From sequence record MN871440.1: 64,000 nucleotides of DNA, one strand, 5' to 3'. Numbering within the stretch: position 1 is the first letter of the stretch; each line of letters begins with the position of its first letter. Under the pieces are notes generated by a model. It made no database searches. It saw only the letters and a list, made by a program, of their open reading frames with translations, and had not been told where the DNA came from. The position numbers and the translations under genes were made by a program. Of the stretch, positions 24,064-62,051 are shown piece by piece.

Positions 24064-24619
24064 GACGTACTTTCTCCATTCGTCTGGTCAACATATCGAG
24101 AAACGTTTGCAGATCGCTCGGACTCAGAATGAGAATATTACGCTTGTTCTCATTCTCGTTTAGTTCGTGCTCAATAGCACTAACGGGTGCTAATGCTCCA
24201 GTGTGCTGGATAAAGCGATGCGCTGTGTCTCCGATGTCATACCAGTTTTTAGAACCGACTGGGAATTCAGTCAGTCTCCAATAAACCTTACCATTTGCAT
24301 CTACGTGATAAAGAACTGTGTTTTCTTTATCAGGCATGTTTTTATATTTCTGAATAGCAGAGCTGTGTACCTGTTCTTGAGACTTAATCCATCCGTGAAA
24401 TGGGTCATAGATGTTATTAAGCATCAACAAGATCCAATAATAGTTTACGTCGCCATATAGATTATGCGCTAATAGCTCGGGTCTGGGGTCACCAGAAACG
24501 AAATACTTGCGCAACACAAAGCTACCAGCTACTTCGTTAAAATATTTGCCATAGCTCTTGAAAATATTAGCTGTTGGTATACCGTTATATTTGATTGGGT
24601 CAAAAAATTGCATCAACAT
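24053..24619 (-). CDS. 53: baseplate wedge gp53
   Basis: FFDPIKY; RPELLAHNLYGDVNYYWILLMLNNIYDPF; HELNENENKRNI. Confidence 0.95.
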   Translation of the reverse strand: MLMQFFDPIKYNGIPTANIFKSYGKYFNEVAGSFVLRKYFVSGDPRPELLAHNLYGDVNYYWILLMLNNIYDPFHGWIKSQEQVHSSAIQKYKNMPDKENTVLYHVDANGKVYWRLTEFPVGSKNWYDIGDTAHRFIQHTGALAPVSAIEHELNENENKRNILILSPSDLQTFLDMLTRRMEKVRRGS

Positions 24620-25692
24620 TATTTGCTATCCTTACCACTAAATGAACCAAAGAAGAATTGTCCAGAGTCCTGTCCACCCAAGTTGGCAGTCAACGATTCC
24701 CAATATTCTCTGAAAACTGGGCGCAGTTCTGTGAATGTCAGCTCAAGATCAATTGCAATAGGATCACCAGCGGTACCAGCGAACGAGTTGTAAATCTGTT
24801 CTGGCGTGCTTGTGATTCGAATATTCGACAACGCACAGGGCCCCATTGCGAATTTTGGAGTGTATCTGATCTCGGCAACATCAGACTGACTATTAACACG
24901 CTCTTCCAAATACCACAGAGGTGGCACTTTTAGAACTTGAATACTTTCTGTACCGCCTGTATTACCAGCTTCGGTTTTCAGTGATGTAGCAGCACCGCCG
25001 ATTTTATCGAGCATCTGATTGACAGATGTCACTCCAGCATTTGACGGCGAACTATAGATTAAGAACGCACGAATAATTTGTCCAACTTCTTTGAGTTCAG
25101 CAACGTTTTTTGGTCGAAAGTTATACAAGAATGTCTGAGTTCTAAGTGATGTATTTTTATACATATTAGCAGAGCGATTCCCAAGAACTTTGCCGGAGAT
25201 CTGTGAGTTGTATTGTTGTGATGCTTTACCAATATTAACACTGATTTGTTGCATTGCGGTTGTCATGAATGCGTTGCCAAGATCTTTCGCGCCCTCGATA
25301 ACACCGGAGCCCGCGGAGCCCGCATAATTCATTGCCATATCCTGCAAGAAACCGCCGTCATTATCGCTATATTCGTGACTGACGTTTTGGTTTAAGTTCG
25401 GCATATACATTTGAATGACTGCTAATGTCTTTTCGTTGAACTTACCAGTAACGCTGTTCAGACTTCGTTTTTGAATATCAGCGTTTGATAGTCCTTGTCC
25501 CATTGCTTCGACGCAATAGAAACATAGATAGTTTTTGTGTCGCTCTATTTCGCCTTTCATGGCCAATGGATATTGTAGAGCTTGAATGCCAGCATCGCCG
25601 GCGGGTGAACTCAGAAAGTTGCCGATGAATTTACCAGCAGCATCCGAGATCGTCTTCACGCCATTATTGAGCATGGTGATTTTCTGTGCCAT
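24619..25692 (-). CDS. 48: baseplate-tail tube junction gp48
   Basis: LQYP, IQMYMP, RTQTFLYNFRPKNVAE, IDLELTFTEL motifs. Confidence 0.8.
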   Translation of the reverse strand: MAQKITMLNNGVKTISDAAGKFIGNFLSSPAGDAGIQALQYPLAMKGEIERHKNYLCFYCVEAMGQGLSNADIQKRSLNSVTGKFNEKTLAVIQMYMPNLNQNVSHEYSDNDGGFLQDMAMNYAGSAGSGVIEGAKDLGNAFMTTAMQQISVNIGKASQQYNSQISGKVLGNRSANMYKNTSLRTQTFLYNFRPKNVAELKEVGQIIRAFLIYSSPSNAGVTSVNQMLDKIGGAATSLKTEAGNTGGTESIQVLKVPPLWYLEERVNSQSDVAEIRYTPKFAMGPCALSNIRITSTPEQIYNSFAGTAGDPIAIDLELTFTELRPVFREYWESLTANLGGQDSGQFFFGSFSGKDSK

Positions 25693-25714: not shown

Positions 25715-25728
25715 TATTTAGCTAAATA
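25715..25728. promoter_or_regulatory. back-to-back late promoters (TATTTAG|CTAAATA palindrome)
   Basis: Perfect 14-bp palindrome between divergent genes 48 and 4. Confidence 0.7.
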
Positions 25729-25746: not shown

Positions 25747-26217
25747 ATGTCACAAGCATACAAGGGTAAATTTGTACCCGAAAATAAAGAAAAATACAGA
25801 GGTGATTACTCCAAAATCACATACAGAAGTAGCTGGGAGCTTTTTATCATGAAAATGCTTGATAGAAACACAGAAGTTAAATGGTGGGGAAGTGAGATCA
25901 CAGTAATACCTTATTTCTCAGAATCAGATGGAAAGAAAAGAAGATATTTTATTGATATGACTATCTGTTGGAAAGACGGTAACATTTCACTCTGGGAAGT
26001 CAAGCCAGCCGCAGAGACTCGTCCGCCTGCTATACCATCACGAAATACAGCAGCAGCAAAGAAACGATTCGCGGATCAAGTTTATACTTGGGGTGTGAAT
26101 ACATCGAAATGGAAAGCGACAATCGATGTGTGTCAGAAAAAAGGTTGGAAATTTAATATCATAACCGAAGATGTTCTAAAGAGAATGGGATTTAAAGGAG
26201 TGAAGGATGATATTTGA
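25747..26217 (+). CDS. 4: head completion nuclease gp4
   Basis: AYKGKFVPENKEKYRGD...YRSSWE; WWGSE; RRYFID; EVKP. Confidence 0.95.
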   Translation: MSQAYKGKFVPENKEKYRGDYSKITYRSSWELFIMKMLDRNTEVKWWGSEITVIPYFSESDGKKRRYFIDMTICWKDGNISLWEVKPAAETRPPAIPSRNTAAAKKRFADQVYTWGVNTSKWKATIDVCQKKGWKFNIITEDVLKRMGFKGVKDDI

Positions 26218-36190: not shown

Positions 36191-36348
36191 AGATTTCGAG
36201 ATTCGAGAAACCGTAAGATCTTTCCGAGCATGTATTGGTGGCATCATGCTCGTATGAACGGGACCAGCGCCCACCTAGCTAGTTGACAGTAGACACTAAA
36301 TAACTTAGTGACAGTGGAACCCCTTGCGCTAACACTGTGATGCGGACT

Positions 36349-54164: not shown

Positions 54165-56646
54165 TTCATAAGCGCCTTGATGATCCAAAAATGAATCTCA
54201 TTAACTATATGTCGAGTGGAATAACAGGCTATACGTTTTTGGGATTCATAGAAATTCAGAAAGACGATTATTGGGGCATGAAAGTTGGCGAACGGACCTT
54301 CGCCGCTTGTCATTTGCTCAACGAACGTTCAAAATGGCCTGTTTCTGAGGAAGAAGAAAAAGAGCAAAAATTCATTGACAGCGGGCACAATACCGTTCTG
54401 TATTTCAAGGGAACCGATAACACCAGTTATCTGAAACGATTCAAATCTAAAGATATGGCAATCAAATGGTTTTATAAAACCAAAGTTTTTATTACCGATA
54501 ACTCCTCTTGCTGGGTGAATAGCTAATGAGAATAGAACGAATTCGAGATCACGACGAATATTGCGACATCGGAGAAGTAACACACGATTATGTGGAAGTA
54601 AGCAAAGAAGAGTTTGACAAACTGCGAGATCAAGCAGAAGATCGCGATGTCACTGGATTGTGTTCTCCTCCGATTGAGTTTCTTTATTCAAAAGAGCTTC
54701 ATTCGGAAGGTTGTGAGATTCTTGGTAAAGCTTACCTCTATGAATCTGAGAAACGTCCGGGGGCGCCAGAAGAAAATCGGTATTTGAAGTTGACAGAAAT
54801 GCCGAAACCATATAAGCTGGTAACACTGATGAAAGATGATTTGACTCTGGAGCAACGTCGAGCTTATCGTGAACGAGTCAAATCTGGTTACTACAAAACA
54901 AAAGGATAAGAAATGTTTTATCGTATTTCGAACATCAAAGACGTTCCTACCGAACTGGTAGAGATCAACAAAATGGAAAAGCCGTACAAAGACGAAACTA
55001 ACGGTATTATGTTTAAACCGTTCGCTCGTTTTGGTATCGGTTCTGGTAGTGATGCTTATTCCACTATCTATCGAACTGTTTCCGAAGACGGTAAAATGGA
55101 AATGCAGTTCCGTTTGTACGGCGCTTATGACGTCGAAGTGATTCGGTTTGATCTTACCAATGGTGTTTACAAAATCAGCCGTCATAACGTCAAATCGCTT
55201 GGGATGAGCCGCAAGCCAAATAGCAGTGGTTTGTTCTGCGTAAAAGACGCATATCGAATTGGTGTTGGTCCGACTCTTGCTATTGGTGATGGAGTTACCA
55301 GTCGAAATGGAAACTGCAAAGTTCTTCTGATCACAGAGGACGCTGTTGTTCTTAGCGATGACAAGAACAAAACCATTCTGATTCGTAAGAACGATCTCGG
55401 CGCATTGGAAGCACACGGTATCGGTTATATCGATGAACTGTTGTAATCACGATTAAGGGCCTTCGGGCCCTTTTTGGAGATAAGATGAAAGCATATGAAA
55501 CGAGACACTACATTGAACACCCAGTATTACATAATCGATTGTTGTATCTGCTTAACGTTCTGAACAACTACTATCCCAAATCCAAAAAGATAGCAGAATC
55601 ACAGGAGTTCGCGAATTTCAAGAGCGACACTTATTGGTTGTTTGACAAGCTTTGTCCAGAGTTGAGCTGTGCCAACAGCGAAGATTTTGTAGAAAGTTTC
55701 AATCGCGAACGTCACGCGAAAGGATATTTTCAGATTTATGTGAGAATAATTCCTAAAGTCGCTTGACATCAAATTCAGTTCTGTTAAGATAGCTACATCG
55801 AAACAAACTGAGGAACAAATCATGATGACTACCGCTGAACTGAAAGCAAAACGCGCCAAACGTGGATTCGCAACCGAGAAAGATGTTTTGATCGAATCTC
55901 ATGCATTCGCACAACGCGCACTGTCACAAGCTGTTATCATGGAACACGCCGAGAACATCGATCTGTTCCGCAGTAAAATCAAAGTTTACGAAACTCGTAT
56001 TAACGAAATCACAATCTAAGGAAATATTATGGCTTATTATCTGAAACACCAAGTAACTCTTCCAAAAGTCGAATACAACTATATCCGACTGATTGATATG
56101 AAACCAGGAGAATCGATTACGATTAAAGATCGCTCTTATGTCCTACTGAACATCGAGCGAACTGGCACCAATGTTGAGCCCGTATATAATCTGGAAGCAA
56201 GTGATGAACGTGTTTCTATGCGTATTGTCAACGGTAACGCTCTGATCACCCGAGTCAACAAAGTTAACTTCGGCATCACCAACGAAAGTATCGAAGTCGG
56301 GAAAATGGGCTGGGTGAAACGTGGTGGATTCTATTCCCACAAAGTAAGAAAAGTAATGAATCCTGGTCTGATTACCGGTCGTGCTATCATCGAAGGTGAT
56401 ATGATCGAACTGCACCGGAATAGCGGTACTCGGATCGAAGTTCTGAAAATGGGCGGTGAGCCTATGATCGACCCGATGACACAAGAATACATCCTGCTGA
56501 AAATTATCAGCAAAGACAACAGCAAAGATCAAGTTGTGTTACACTCTGTCAAATCCGAAATGGATGATTGCAACCTGCAACGTGTTGCTGGTGATGTTGT
56601 CTATGTCAACAACTACATGGAATCAATTATTCCACATCGTCGTTGA
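54161..56646 (+). CDS. run of hypothetical genes (54161-54526, 54526-54909, 54913-55446, 55485-55766, 55822-56019, 56029-56646)
   Basis: ORFs with RBSs; terminator at 55455; promoter at 55763. Confidence 0.6.
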
Positions 56647-56714
56647 TTTACATAGAAAGTTGAAGTACAATCTGTGCCTATCGAGTAAGGCCCTTTTTCA
56701 TTTATGAGGATATC

Positions 56715-57617
56715 ATGATCGACATTATCAAAAACACCACACAAGCTGCAATCATTGGCGATTGCGTAGGCGCATTCAACGAATTCAATTTCGGCACTAA
56801 AGGAAAGAAAAGACTGCGTAACGTAGATCTCGAACTCCTGAAAACAAAACGCGATGTTTTTAACAATCAATACGGTAACTTCACAGACGATACCACTTGT
56901 GCGCTGATCACCATGCGCAACTTCAAATATGGTGAGTTTGATGTTCCAGCTATTAAGCGCGATATGAAGCGTTGGATCGAGCGTGGTGCGTTTTCTTCCA
57001 CTGGCGAGTGCTTTGATGTTGGTACAGGTACTGCCTATGCCATACTCAAGGACCAACCGGTAACAGACCCATCTAAAGGTGCCGGTAACGGCGCGCTCAT
57101 GCGTATGTATCCAGTCGCGATTGCAACTTACGGTAGAAGTCCAGAAGATATCGAGCGAATCGTTAAATACATGACGGAGTTTACCCATCCGGTTCCGTTG
57201 TGTCTGCATTACTCTATGCTATATGTTCGTATCATGCATCGGATATTCGACGGAGTAAACAAAAGGACGCTATCCAAAGAGTTTGGAGCGTATTTCGATG
57301 AAGACTCATGCTTGACTACTGGCTACGTTAAGGACTCGCTCACAATCGCTTGGAGAGTGTTCCTAGAGTTCGAACACAAAGAGTATGGGATTTTTCTCAT
57401 AGCAAACATGGGATTAGATAGCGACACAATCGCAAGTATCTATGGATCAATGATTGGCGCATATACAACTGTCCAGAACAAAAGTCAAGAGTTTACTCCT
57501 TGGCTAGTAGAGAATATCAAACGACAAGATCTAGTTGATAGTATTGTTAAAGAGTTCACTCACCGAGTTGTTTGTACAATGATTGATCATTTACCAAGTT
57601 ATTTGCACAAAAGTTAA
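56715..57617 (+). CDS. ADP-ribosylglycohydrolase (ARH/DraG family)
   Basis: GDCVG, TDDT, FDVG, GNGALMR, DSDT motifs; TTGATT-17-TACAAT at 56643. Confidence 0.92.
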   Translation: MIDIIKNTTQAAIIGDCVGAFNEFNFGTKGKKRLRNVDLELLKTKRDVFNNQYGNFTDDTTCALITMRNFKYGEFDVPAIKRDMKRWIERGAFSSTGECFDVGTGTAYAILKDQPVTDPSKGAGNGALMRMYPVAIATYGRSPEDIERIVKYMTEFTHPVPLCLHYSMLYVRIMHRIFDGVNKRTLSKEFGAYFDEDSCLTTGYVKDSLTIAWRVFLEFEHKEYGIFLIANMGLDSDTIASIYGSMIGAYTTVQNKSQEFTPWLVENIKRQDLVDSIVKEFTHRVVCTMIDHLPSYLHKS

Positions 57618-57624
57618 TCAGTTG

Positions 57625-57698
57625 TAGGAAGTCGCGCCAGCGACTGCGTAGCTAACTCGTTGATATCATTAAAGAAGAGAAGATAGATCTTCATTAAA
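57625..57698 (+). repeat. 74-bp intergenic element, copy 2
   Basis: Same two blocks and 17-nt spacing as 28275-28348; followed by an A12 run. Confidence 0.9.
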
Positions 57699-57781
57699 AA
57701 AAAAAAACTCGTTAGTTTAGCGGCTTACGCCGCAGTGCGAACGCACTAAATATAATAAATCAGTTCATTAAGAGGGACAAA

Positions 57782-60700
57782 ATGTTAACAACTAAACAAT
57801 TATTCGAACGTCAAGAAGAACAAGGTTATGATCGCTTCTTGACTGAAAATACCTTGTATGATAAAGACACTAAATTGGCATTCATCAATGATGAAACTGC
57901 TATCATCAATGCCTTTACATTCAACTTCTTGGGTATTCTCGGGAGCTTTAACGCTGCTCGTCAACTGAACGATCAAACCACTCTGAAATTCATTCAGCGT
58001 TATTTCAAAACCGACGGTCAACTTCGTCTTGGTAATATCGAGGACAAGAACCACAACATTTCGCTGATCATCAAACTGATGAATGACAAGCAAATGTTTA
58101 TCAGTACAGCTAAAGTAAACGAAATGACTCGTTTTCTGGTACTGTGTAAGTCCGGTGTTATTAACACTATCGATGATGATATTGTTCGCGCTTGGGTTGC
58201 TAATATCAAGAATACCGCTTTGTTGAAAGCAGATACAAAACTGCGTGACGTTCTACTGAAATTCAAGAACGGCGCAATCAGTATGATTGATGCTTCTAAA
58301 GAAATGCGTCGTCAACGCACCAAACACGAAGAAATCAGCATGGAATATTGGGACGTTAGCAAGCGTATTCGTTTCAAGAACATGGATACCATGACCACTG
58401 GCACTGCTGCTGGTAACGCTCAGGACGCTGATGCTGCGATTTCTCAAGTTGACACTAGCGTTGATACTGTCGATAGCGTAGAAGATGCCACAGACGCACC
58501 TGAACCGGTTCCCGTTGTTGCGCCTGAACCAGTCAAACCCGCGTATCTGACCTATAATCACGATGCTGGATTTGCTGATGCTGTTATTTCAATCGTAGAA
58601 CAACACATCAATCAGAAAGGTCAAGGTATTTCTGGTATGAATGATTTTGATCCGAATGAATACATCATGGGAGATGACTTTAGCCCAACTGCTTTTGAAT
58701 TTGATCTTGATGATCCCGCACAGAAAGAGATCTATGATCGATATACAACTCAGTTTGCCGAAGTGACAAACAAACTCGCGTCGTACTGCCGTCAGTTTAA
58801 GTTGCATTCGTCTTCAATTGATAATATTCAGTCTGATGTCGGTACCTATCATCTGAACGATGAAACGTTCTTCATTAAGAATCGCGCTGAATTTGAAAAT
58901 CTTTACAAGAAATACGGATTGTATGGCATCGCAGATCCATTTAACGGTACAATCGAAATGTTTACCGTGATCTATGGGATTGCCGGTAGCAAAGTTGATA
59001 ATAAATCTTGGCTGTTTGGCTTTAGTGCTGATGATATTCTTCGTGAACTGTTCAACGACAAACTCGGCAGCAAAGTTGAAGCTCATAGTTATGGCATGAC
59101 ACAAGACATGATTATCACTCTTGCCATTCGTCTTGAGAACGCACCAGATGAACGTAGAATCGCTATCGTTGATCAATTTGCTGTTAGTTTCATCACAGTT
59201 TCAACTGTGCTTATGGGACATCAAGGCACGGACATGAAACAGAACCCACTGTTTGGTTCTGAGTTTGATATTTTCACCAATACCAAGGCACAAGCCACAT
59301 TGGTTAAAGTCTGTAACGAAGAGATTGCCAAGATTTACCCAACAATCCCGGGTCTGCCGACATGGGGCAAGGGTACCGAGCCGACTAACAAGTTCCGCAA
59401 TATGGTTGTTTATCTGACTCGCGATTATATTACTGGTGCTAACTTTGATTTCATTTCCGAATATTGGCTCAAGAAAATGTATCTTGATGATACCGAATTC
59501 GTTTACGAATACAAGATGACCGCAGGCGCAAAACCAAATGAAATGACGCATATTCCATTGCGTTTCATGCCGTCTATTGCAGTTGCTCAATTGGCCAAGG
59601 CAGTTGTTCGTTATACAAAACTGAACAGCGCGAATTATCCGCCGCTTGAGGCGCTGAAACTGTCAATGACTAAGTTCCCAGAAGTGACCAAAGAAATTCA
59701 AGAAATGATTTTGCAGAAGATTGATAATCCTGCCGAAGTGCATTACGCTATGCAACTGATGCCGACCTATCTTGACTCTGCTACAACAGAAACTCAGGTA
59801 GAAGAGCGTGTTAATTTCTTGCTTAATAACATCAAAACAAAAGATGGCGTTAGACGCTTTGTGTCTCGTATTGGTCAATGTGAACCACACGTTCGTGTTC
59901 CGATGTTGCTTGCAGCATATGAGCACTTTGGCGATGACATGGACGCACAGTATGTTGGTGACTTTACATATGACTTCATCAACAAGATTGATTTCGATGA
60001 AAAATCATCAGCTAAGTTTATGGCTCTTGAGGTCGAATTCGGATTTAAGTTCATGAACAAAGAAAATCTGACCGGTATTAGACGTCGTGATGATAAAGCG
60101 AAAGCACAACAAACTCTGGTTGATATCATTTATAATGGTATGAAAGAAGATGAAGCGGTTGCTAACGCATTCTTTGAAGAACTGGAAACTTATTACAAGA
60201 CCAAAGTTCGCAATACTTTGACTGGTGTTAAGTTCATCTATAACCAAGTATCTGGTGGTCCGATCAACATGTTTGATACCCCTGATATGCGTCGCGTTAA
60301 GAAGATGTTCGAGTTTAACGAGATTGACCCAGACGAACTGGTAAAAGCTGCTAAGATTCGCGCTAAGAAAGGCGAAAACTTTAGTGATTATATTCGTCGT
60401 GTTGAATCTGCTGCTGATTCAAGCACAGTTGTTCCGCCTTGTGCTGTTAGCGATGACAATATCAGCGACGAACAGAAATATTTGATTGGTAAGCATCTGG
60501 TTGATACCTACTATGCAGGCAAACACGGTAACACTTACCCATTGATTCACAAGTCTTTCACTGTTAACTTGTCTTATCCAGAATATAACGAGTTCTTGAA
60601 AGCTCAAGAATCTATTGGCAAACTGGAACAAATTGTGCCAGCTTTCCACGGTACTGGTGGTATCGCTGCTAACATGGTTCTTCGCTATGGTTTCAAGATC

Positions 60701-61342
60701 ATCCCGAGTAAGGATAAATCGGTTGTTGGTCGTATGCTTGGCGATGGTCTTTACTTTAGTAACAAAATCGATAAGATTTTGCAATACGTGAGTAACGATG
60801 GTTATGGTCGTCATGCTGGGACTCGTGGTTATGTGTTCGAAATGGAAACCATTCTTGGTGAGCGCAGACAAGATTATCGTTCTGCTGGTTGTCCGAATCC
60901 AACCGATCATCATGCAGTTCGTTCACCAGAATGGGCCGTGTTTGATCCGAAGAAGCAAGTCAAGATCTTGAAATGCTATGAAGTTGAGCTGAACACTTTC
61001 AGCAAATACAAAGAGCATCAAATCAAAATGAAGGGAAGCATGAACGAAAGCAAAACAATGAAGTTCGGTGAAATGCTGACCGAAGCCAAGATGGCCAAGA
61101 CTAGCGATTATGCGATTTATACTTTCTATGACGGTATGATCCCGATGCGCAAGAACGGAATTCTTGAGTATGTTGACCCGAAAGAGTTCGTTCCGGCTAA
61201 CGGCGTAGAACTTGAGTATGGCGAAGACTCATATGTTTCTGTGTATATTCCATCGAAGTCAACAGAATACAATAGATATTCTATGTGTAAGAAACTTAAA
61301 GGAAAAGACTTGGAGAAATTCTTGTCCAGAGCCTGTAAGTAA
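57782..61342 (+). CDS. 1186-aa late protein with a C-terminal PARP-like (H-Y-E) ADP-ribosyltransferase domain
   Basis: FHGTG, GDGLYFS...KILQY, PEWAVFD; CTAAATA at 57746; terminator at 61347. Confidence 0.8.
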   Translation: MLTTKQLFERQEEQGYDRFLTENTLYDKDTKLAFINDETAIINAFTFNFLGILGSFNAARQLNDQTTLKFIQRYFKTDGQLRLGNIEDKNHNISLIIKLMNDKQMFISTAKVNEMTRFLVLCKSGVINTIDDDIVRAWVANIKNTALLKADTKLRDVLLKFKNGAISMIDASKEMRRQRTKHEEISMEYWDVSKRIRFKNMDTMTTGTAAGNAQDADAAISQVDTSVDTVDSVEDATDAPEPVPVVAPEPVKPAYLTYNHDAGFADAVISIVEQHINQKGQGISGMNDFDPNEYIMGDDFSPTAFEFDLDDPAQKEIYDRYTTQFAEVTNKLASYCRQFKLHSSSIDNIQSDVGTYHLNDETFFIKNRAEFENLYKKYGLYGIADPFNGTIEMFTVIYGIAGSKVDNKSWLFGFSADDILRELFNDKLGSKVEAHSYGMTQDMIITLAIRLENAPDERRIAIVDQFAVSFITVSTVLMGHQGTDMKQNPLFGSEFDIFTNTKAQATLVKVCNEEIAKIYPTIPGLPTWGKGTEPTNKFRNMVVYLTRDYITGANFDFISEYWLKKMYLDDTEFVYEYKMTAGAKPNEMTHIPLRFMPSIAVAQLAKAVVRYTKLNSANYPPLEALKLSMTKFPEVTKEIQEMILQKIDNPAEVHYAMQLMPTYLDSATTETQVEERVNFLLNNIKTKDGVRRFVSRIGQCEPHVRVPMLLAAYEHFGDDMDAQYVGDFTYDFINKIDFDEKSSAKFMALEVEFGFKFMNKENLTGIRRRDDKAKAQQTLVDIIYNGMKEDEAVANAFFEELETYYKTKVRNTLTGVKFIYNQVSGGPINMFDTPDMRRVKKMFEFNEIDPDELVKAAKIRAKKGENFSDYIRRVESAADSSTVVPPCAVSDDNISDEQKYLIGKHLVDTYYAGKHGNTYPLIHKSFTVNLSYPEYNEFLKAQESIGKLEQIVPAFHGTGGIAANMVLRYGFKIIPSKDKSVVGRMLGDGLYFSNKIDKILQYVSNDGYGRHAGTRGYVFEMETILGERRQDYRSAGCPNPTDHHAVRSPEWAVFDPKKQVKILKCYEVELNTFSKYKEHQIKMKGSMNESKTMKFGEMLTEAKMAKTSDYAIYTFYDGMIPMRKNGILEYVDPKEFVPANGVELEYGEDSYVSVYIPSKSTEYNRYSMCKKLKGKDLEKFLSRACK

Positions 61343-61451
61343 ACTAAAGCCACCTTCGGGTGGCTTTTTTGTGTAAAAGTCCTTGCGTCGATCTGCCGTT
61401 GTGTTACTATACACACATCGAAACGAAATACACAACTGAGGAAAACATCAT

Positions 61452-61752
61452 GGATATGGCAATTCAAGCACAGTTCGACGCAATCGCAAAGCAGTTCAAT
61501 GTTAATCGTGACGCGCTTGAGCGTATGGCAAATGGTGTTGTGTCTCGTATCAAATACTTCGGTATCGAGAAGTTCAAGAAACTCCCGGAAGCTGAACAGC
61601 GTGTTATTCTGAGTGAAGCTGTTGCTCACTGGTTTCACGCTCAACAAAAGATCACCAACGATTATCTGATGAATCGTAATGGTTGTCGCGAAAAGCTGCA
61701 AAAGCAAGTCTGGAAAGAAATCCAGAAAAATCAGAAAAAAGTTCAAAAATAA
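61452..61752 (+). CDS. hypothetical early protein
   Basis: Promoter 61383-61410 and GAGG RBS. Confidence 0.65.
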
Positions 61753-61823
61753 GTTTGACACGACTAAGAGGCCATGTAATAATGGCCTCATTGAAACGAA
61801 ACAATCACTCTGAGGAAAACATC

Positions 61824-62051
61824 ATGAACAACATCGAAATCAAAGCCTACTTCGCTGTAACTGCTGCTAAGAAAACCAAAGCTCAAGTAGCTCGCGAACT
61901 GAACGTTTCCCCGCGTACCATCGGTCGTTACATCGACAAGACTGTGGAAATGGTTCGCGATCAAGTCGCTGCTAAACTGGAAGCTCAGTTCGCCGGTAAA
62001 GTACAACGTCGCAAAACCTACGTTTACAATAACCCGAAAAAATCAGCGTAA
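61824..62051 (+). CDS. small HTH DNA-binding protein
   Basis: TKAQVARELNVSPRTIGRYI; promoter at 61755. Confidence 0.75.
   Translation: MNNIEIKAYFAVTAAKKTKAQVARELNVSPRTIGRYIDKTVEMVRDQVAAKLEAQFAGKVQRRKTYVYNNPKKSA

Follow-up and report, generated by a model that had tools for sequence, protein, structure and literature searches.

What would a T4-like phage do with a gene for an ADP-ribosyltransferase (ART) that stands directly behind a gene for an enzyme predicted to take ADP-ribose off again? The question is raised by a stretch of 64,000 nucleotides from sequence record MN871440.1, here called the window; positions refer to the window, and adding 124000 converts them to positions of the record. 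An open reading frame (ORF) at 56715-57617 encodes a putative ADP-ribosylglycohydrolase (ARH; protein P0001), and the adjacent ORF on the same (+) strand, 57782-61342, encodes a PARP-like transferase of 1186 aa, the writer (P0002). Positions 56000-62000 are 100% identical to Aeromonas phage AsFcp_1 (MN871440), a 221-kb T4-like phage of the Straboviridae (Angelvirus group), and 92-95% identical to PX29, AsFcp_2, and AsFcp_4. For genome-wide searches, the AsFcp_1 genome was rebuilt from the pieces of MN871440. Our preferred answer, to which we give a probability of about 0.4, is that a late and probably packaged PARP-type writer is accompanied by an early ARH that would strip the marks made by the late or packaged transferases of the phage.

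As judged from its conservation and modelled structure, the C-terminal region of the writer (aa 885-1085; 60434..61036, +) is an ADP-ribosyltransferase domain with the PARP fold, an H-Y-E triad, and predicted activity. P0002 scored below threshold against PF00644 (PARP; 20.1 bits, cut-off 26.7); this profile was matched at E<=0.01 (best 6e-10) by 38 of the 38 relatives sampled, and a word search returned more than 150 relatives of 1,100-1,400 aa. The triad residues H956, Y991, and E1050 are invariant in 73 aligned sequences. An AlphaFold2 (AF2) model built on this alignment has a mean pLDDT of 79, and its ART domain aligns with tankyrase-2 over 171 residues (VIA Z 15.2, rmsd 3.4 Å). PARP10 (Z 14.9) and PARP1 (Z 14.5) match as well, PARP domains fill the 17 best rows without exception, and Foldseek concurs with a match to PARP1 (E=1.6e-6). 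The triad, the fold, and the matches of the relatives thus bear out the name PARP-like, which this gene had received in a first-pass annotation of the window. The domain shares its fold (Z ~15) and triad with the eukaryotic PARPs (PARP1/2, tankyrases, PARP10); however, it is only 13-18% identical to them, P0002 has no WGR domain, and its PF00644 match stays below threshold. A WGR domain (PF05406) accompanies the PARP domain in two metagenome relatives, P0066 and P0112, as in eukaryotic PARP1-3. No match to PF03496, the R-S-E (Alt-type) family, was found in P0002, and hhalign detected no similarity to the Alt protein of AsFcp_1 itself (probability 0.1). A sequence search of the PDB with P0002 gave no match. 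A search with the P0002 profile returned weak matches to PARP1, along with a helical PDB chain, PP507, which we judged to be a spurious, low-complexity match.

Four further regions make up the rest of the protein. The N-terminal conserved helical domain (aa 1-203; 57782..58390, +; pLDDT >90) carries a near-invariant motif, L-x-E-N-(S/T)-L-Y, at aa 20-26, in which E22 and N23 are invariant. Across the family a variable leader precedes this motif, and some relatives begin just 2-4 residues before it. Searches found no similarity of this domain to Pfam, the ESM Atlas (aa 1-205), or Alt. A disordered acidic linker rich in Pro, Ala, and Asp follows (aa 204-250; 58391..58531, +; pLDDT <50, net charge -10), and then a putative alpha-solenoid of the ARM/HEAT-like kind (aa 251-880; 58532..60421, +), all-helical in the AF2 model, whose matches to AP2, importins, and Pumilio (VIA Z 7-10) reflect generic repeat folds. 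Behind the ART domain lies a small conserved beta domain (aa 1107-1186; 61100..61339, +; pLDDT ~90) with nearly invariant F1115, G1118, P1121, and G1150. Ralstonia phage RSP15 (contig L006, 1-6200) has tandem giant ART-bearing proteins: ORF128 (~1047 aa) matches PF03496, and ORF127 (1373 aa) ends in a PARP-like domain.

The upstream gene (56715..57617, +) encodes 300 aa that fall within the ARH/DraG superfamily, as the first-pass annotation had proposed. P0001 passed PF03747 (ADP_ribosyl_GH) with E=2e-33 (116.8 bits, cut-off 26.2), a match that was recovered again in the genome-wide search, and it matched phrog_6572 with E=7.5e-114. When aligned with solved ARHs, it keeps the catalytic and binuclear-metal motifs E23, T57-D58-D59, T157-H158, and D235-S-D237-T238, and we predict it to be an intact, active, metal-dependent ADP-ribosylhydrolase. 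Its PDB matches are Lmo0067, Tri1, and DraG, and its best NCBIfam matches are Tri1 and DraG; by sequence, these Arg-specific hydrolases are its nearest relatives. P0001 belongs to the superfamily but to neither equivalog, because its scores lie far under the cut-offs for both Tri1 (NF041672; 73.5 bits against 490) and DraG (TIGR02662; 63.4 bits against 337). The N-terminal extension of Tri1 is absent: residue 47 of P0001 aligns at position 104 of the NF041672 profile, where the match begins. A search of the AsFcp_1 genome found no Macro or NADAR gene, and the ARH is the only eraser recognised there.

The writer very probably belongs to the late class, a judgement that rests on its promoter sequence. 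A gp55-type late promoter box, CTAAATA, lies at 57746..57752 (+), 29 nt before the ATG of P0002. This heptamer is the late-promoter consensus of Aeh1 (Nolan et al. 2006, PMC1524935), whose published list of late promoters omits the site before the PARP-like gene. The window contains 12 copies, eight of them in the correct orientation 11-33 nt upstream of a start codon; the genes with assigned functions that follow encode fibritin (wac), a gp9-like connector, a gp48-like tube cap, the gp4 head-completion protein, and a baseplate hub. Genome-wide in AsFcp_1, 25 of 34 copies precede an ORF, among them those for portal, scaffold, major capsid, and vertex proteins and for Alt. The box before P0002 has stayed unchanged in PX29, Aeh1, and phiAS5, in the midst of a spacer that has diverged. 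It is kept in phage Ahp1_CNU-2021, which has no ARH and where it overlaps the upstream stop codon, and in metagenome contig L087, where the spacer between ARH and writer has shrunk to 12 nt and the box lies within the 3' end of the ARH gene, 27 nt ahead of the start codon. A late box [TAC]TAAATA, in most cases ATAAATA, precedes 27-31 of 46 non-redundant, full-length IMG/VR relatives, whereas the frequency for the remaining genes of these loci is 9-14% (p ~1e-15). The IMG/VR relatives are located in replication modules, near gp32, gp59, RNase H, RegA, gp44/62, gp43, UvsW, and gp46/47. Conservation of the box and its enrichment across the family agree with the late timing that the first-pass annotation had given this gene.

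Downstream, the gene is closed by a strong bidirectional intrinsic terminator (61346..61367, +; 9-bp stem and T-run), after which 61368-61449 resembles an early-type promoter and start region with the Aeh1 Pe consensus ...ACACATCGAAAC. The counterpart in Aeh1 is a terminator at 86253-86268 followed by Pe:86260 (PMC1524935). With the late box upstream, and a terminator and early-type promoter downstream, P0002 would form a monocistronic late island between early units. Elsewhere in the window, two CTAAATA boxes on opposite strands stand back to back at 25715-25728, serving the divergent late genes for the gp48-like (24619-25692, -) and gp4-like (25747-26217, +) proteins, and the copies at 36296, 36655, and 39681 (+) have no ORF start downstream and may be late promoters for RNAs.

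The ARH gene lies in an early-type unit, so the two genes appear to differ in promoter type as the first-pass annotation claimed, but the difference is probably not made by the sigma70-like site that it named, TTGATT-17-TACAAT at 56643..56671 (+). That sequence is present; however, it is weak, matching 9 of 12 positions, and sites of this quality occur at chance frequency in the scan (31 observed, 31.5 expected). The genuine early promoters of the clade are much stronger: in them, GTTGACA-N17-TAtaAT precedes ACATCGAAAC, and an A-tract or an extended TG is present. The hexamers of the site are kept in position in PX29 and Aeh1, and phiAS5 has TTGACA-16-TAAACT there. The list of Aeh1 early promoters contains none at the orthologous place, the nearest being Pe:91935 (PMC1524935). 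To this promoter corresponds the best early sigma70 candidate for the ARH unit, which lies upstream at 55763..55790 (+) and reads TTGACA-16-TAAGAT with an extended TG (10 of 12 matches). Between the -10 of the weak site and the ATG of the ARH lies a degenerate terminator hairpin with a U-run (56676..56700, +), which separates the upstream ORF from the ARH. It has decayed in AsFcp_1 (-4.6 kcal/mol) as compared with PX29 (-8.4) and phiAS5 (-16.1), and its Aeh1 counterpart is a TransTerm terminator at 90990-91010. From these sequences it is more likely that the ARH is transcribed mainly by read-through from 55763-55790, perhaps with a contribution from the weak local site.

The spacer between the two genes (57618..57781, +) is structured. 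Its minimum free energy is -46.3 kcal/mol (z=-3.5), a value reached by none of 200 shuffles, and it folds into four stem-loops (for example, 57630-57645), none of them with a U-tract. Within 57650-57700, an alignment with PX29, Aeh1, and phiAS5 contains two invariant blocks, GCTAACTC(G/A)TTGAT and ATAGAT..TCATTAAAG. AsFcp_1 has a run of 12 A where PX29 has 21 extra bases, and the indel at 57698 is polymorphic in wastewater contigs.

T4 Alt is an ADP-ribosyltransferase that is packaged in the head and injected. Like it, P0002 is a large ART encoded by a T4-like phage; its gene stands among non-structural genes and has a late promoter and a terminator to itself, and a packaged P0002 would be expected to act, as Alt does, at the start of the next infection. 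The differences are that T4 Alt is an Arg-specific R-S-E enzyme (PF03496), whereas P0002 has the H-Y-E PARP fold, is nearly twice the size, and contains an unrelated N-terminal domain and an alpha-solenoid; moreover, AsFcp_1 has a true Alt homologue besides. This R-S-E transferase of 653 aa (phrog_802, E=1.5e-123) is encoded outside the window, 84 kb from the ARH, at record positions 95420-97381 on the - strand (L071:45420-47381), and its gene is preceded, at a distance of 25 nt, by a CTAAATA late box. The first 11 residues, MSIKDMLLSEA, are nearly those found in the gp22-like scaffold protein (MSIKDQLLSEA), which hints that the two have a leader for capsid targeting or cleavage in common.

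In the sequence of events that we favour, the 1186-aa PARP-fold (H-Y-E) transferase would be transcribed late, be made together with the virion proteins, and probably travel in the particle into the next host, in the manner of T4 Alt. The ARH, expressed from its early sigma70 unit, would act as an active metal-dependent ADP-ribosylhydrolase on the marks of the PARP-like protein, of the Alt homologue, or of both, and would do so enzymatically, without binding its neighbour. The marks might then be shorter-lived after injection, or the producing cell might be protected late in infection. We infer the packaging of the writer, its targets, and the marks that the ARH would remove. We put packaging of P0002 at even odds, whereas action of the ARH on the marks of this very writer seems somewhat unlikely. 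The first-pass annotation had spoken of a reversible ADP-ribosylation switch, with the hydrolase immediately upstream of the transferase gene. The enzyme identities, the adjacency, the late writer, and the early-type unit of the ARH stand, and a timed writing and erasing of marks is plausible; the comparative support for a coupling of the two genes, however, is thin.

The pair is conserved within the Aeromonas Straboviridae, namely in PX29, Aeh1, Ah1, phiAS5, phiWae14, and L087, with identities down to 42% for the ARH and 45% for the writer. Several points nevertheless weigh against the reading that we favour. The adjacency is limited to this single clade, where it counts as one evolutionary event because the entire neighbourhood is syntenic. 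Outside the clade, the conservation that the first-pass annotation wished to see checked does not hold: of 63 IMG/VR loci that contain writer relatives, 60 are free of an ARH in their 10-kb flanks, the three profile matches all being Aeromonas loci. Some 45 other full-length relatives are without an ARH, and the Pfam model detected none in the complete genomes of Aeromonas phage Ahp1_CNU-2021 and of Stenotrophomonas phage Marzo, which have full-length writers. An eraser is thus not required, since most writers are without one. The N-terminus of P0002 is unlike the MSIKDxLLSEA leader of Alt and scaffold, and we found neither virion proteomics nor transcript data for any member of the writer family in the literature. 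Early transcription may also run on into P0002, since there is no terminator between the ARH and the writer. The chemistry, too, may mismatch: Arg-ADP-ribose is the substrate of Tri1/DraG-type ARHs, but the usual acceptors of PARP-type enzymes are acidic residues or Ser.

The ARH allele has, by the pattern of sequence identities, been swapped by recombination independently of the writer. The AsFcp_1 ARH shares 99.3% identity with its Ah1 counterpart and 68% with that of PX29, whereas its writer is 99.5-100% identical to those of PX29 and AsFcp_2 and 45% to that of Ah1. Sliding identity places the recombination patch at 56000..57650, with 98-100% Ah1-like sequence from 56400 to 57600 and flanks that are ~100% PX29-like; the right junction falls directly after the ARH stop codon. 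The identical mosaic occurs in an independent metagenome contig, L075 (ARH 100%, writer 99.5%). Contigs from wastewater sequencing runs, which are informative on junction polymorphism and not on transcript starts, strand, or timing, diverge in loose ends exactly at 57625 and 57698. GenBank entry MN871440 carries an UNVERIFIED_ORG flag and no annotation; the mosaic still recurs in L075. The occurrence of one ARH allele with writers only 45% identical argues against specific binding of the antitoxin kind and fits a purely enzymatic or an unrelated role. In Aeromonas and Stenotrophomonas phages, NAD+ salvage genes (NAMPT, NMNAT/Nudix) follow the PARP-like gene at a distance of 3-5 kb (L001 16599-17999 in PX29, L003 14816-16226 in phiAS5, L005 11963-13624 in Marzo, and L019), NAMPT being present in 5 of 52 loci.

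An unrelated role could be that of a counter-defence or clean-up enzyme directed at host ARTs, which would have come to lie next to the PARP-like gene only through a variable accessory region near NAD+ salvage genes. Alleles that differ by 32% between phages with ~100% identical flanks, exchanged by recombination, are an arms-race signature, and NAMPT and NMNAT genes are nearby. ARH homologues are also present in many phages without the writer, just as the writer occurs without an ARH. A precedent exists in the orphan eraser AdfN, which counters DarT1 (PMC11825919). We nevertheless consider this explanation unlikely: the pair persists down to 42% ARH identity, and an ARH has come to adjoin an ART twice.

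The second association is found in Cronobacter phage LPCS28 and contigs L086, L089, and L090, where the interval from the ligase gene to the Dda gene holds an ARH and, divergently adjoining it, an Alt-like R-S-E transferase. These ARHs are 31-33% identical to P0001, and that of LPCS28 matches phrog_6572 with E=1.4e-105. In the two contigs in which we read the spacer, LPCS28 and L086, it measures 42 nt and contains the late box of alt (TATAAATA or CTAAATA). The adjacency thus appears to have arisen independently with different ART classes, the PARP-like one and, in enterobacterial T4-like phages, Alt. Among the ARH neighbours in the jumbo phages Serratia BF and Erwinia Hallingskeid we recognised no ART. 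ARHs of T4-like phages tend to sit by late ARTs of the packaged type, whichever their clade, a pattern that speaks for a link with transferases encoded by the phage itself.

That link might run to Alt instead of the neighbour. In this case, the partner of the ARH would be the Arg-specific Alt-type transferase 84 kb away, and the PARP-like protein would be independent, its marks left untouched by the ARH. In favour of this, P0001 has Arg-ADP-ribose hydrolases as its best family matches, the Alt homologue of AsFcp_1 has a late promoter, and the related ARHs stand beside alt in the four sequences just described. Against this, scores so far under the equivalog cut-offs allow no specificity to be read, the ARH of the Aeromonas phages stays by the PARP-like gene and not by alt, and Ahp1_CNU-2021 has both Alt and the PARP-like protein without an ARH; we therefore regard Alt as sole partner as decidedly improbable. 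Because the ARH is nearest to Tri1 and DraG, the phage encodes an Arg-specific Alt, and a related ARH lies beside alt in enterobacterial T4-like phages, the second option of the first-pass annotation, an eraser directed quite generally at ARTs of the phage itself or of its host, is no less likely than a switch dedicated to the PARP-like protein and its ARH.

A toxin-antitoxin or immunity pair, with the ART as toxin and the ARH as antitoxin for superinfection exclusion or abortive infection, is the published interpretation (Iyer et al. 2022, PMC9503650) and draws on the analogy to DraT/DraG and Tre1/Tri1 and on the 12-nt spacing in L087, but it fits poorly and we rate it very improbable, because the promoter classes are separate (the late box being kept even within the ARH 3' end), the pairing is not obligatory (60 of 63 loci and whole genomes without an ARH), the Tri1 extension is lacking, ARH alleles are freely exchanged, the phages are strictly lytic and T4-like, and a 1186-aa multidomain architecture is unlike that of such toxins.

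The DraT/DraG and Tre1/Tri1 systems likewise combine an ART gene with a neighbouring ARH-superfamily hydrolase that has intact metal and catalytic motifs. They differ from the AsFcp_1 pair in that its writer belongs to another ART clade, its genes have different temporal promoters, and its pairing is not obligatory; the N-terminal extension of Tri1 is an occluding one, which the AsFcp_1 ARH does not have. AdfN (T4 gp30.3) is, like the ARH, an early phage eraser of ADP-ribose near the gene of a packaged ART in T4-like genomes; however, its NADAR fold is unrelated, and it acts on the DNA adducts of the host toxin DarT1. To our knowledge, the only phage ARTs studied experimentally are the R-S-E enzymes of T4, Alt, ModA, and ModB, and our literature search brought up no experiments on a PARP-type ART or an ARH from a phage. 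The adjacency itself is already known from computational work: Aeh1ORF131c, with a PARP domain, and ORF132c, an ARH, are in the list of Nolan et al. 2006 (PMC1524935), and Iyer et al. 2022 treated the same pair. The late promoter, the distribution of the family without ARH, the allele swap, and the domain architecture are not in those papers. New with respect to the literature are the conserved late promoter, the family-wide pattern of a late gene in a replication module, the domain architecture, the recombination patch, and the parallel pairing of Alt with an ARH.

A still broader proposal, which we consider doubtful, is that the widespread ~1,200-aa PARP-fold family, encoded as single late genes in the replication modules of many environmental T4-like phages, would constitute a second, Alt-independent class of virion-delivered ARTs, whose marks an early ARH would take off again at a set time in the Aeromonas phages, so that writing and erasing together would form a timer. 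The pair can be tested in the cultivable phages PX29, Aeh1, and phiAS5, for which Ahp1_CNU-2021 (no ARH) and AsFcp_1 (swapped ARH allele) provide natural controls. If the PARP-like protein is injected, it would represent a new class of effector, one frequently met among environmental T4-like phages. Should phage-made marks be undone by the ARH, this would be the first case of a virus that reverses its own ADP-ribosylation in a programmed manner.

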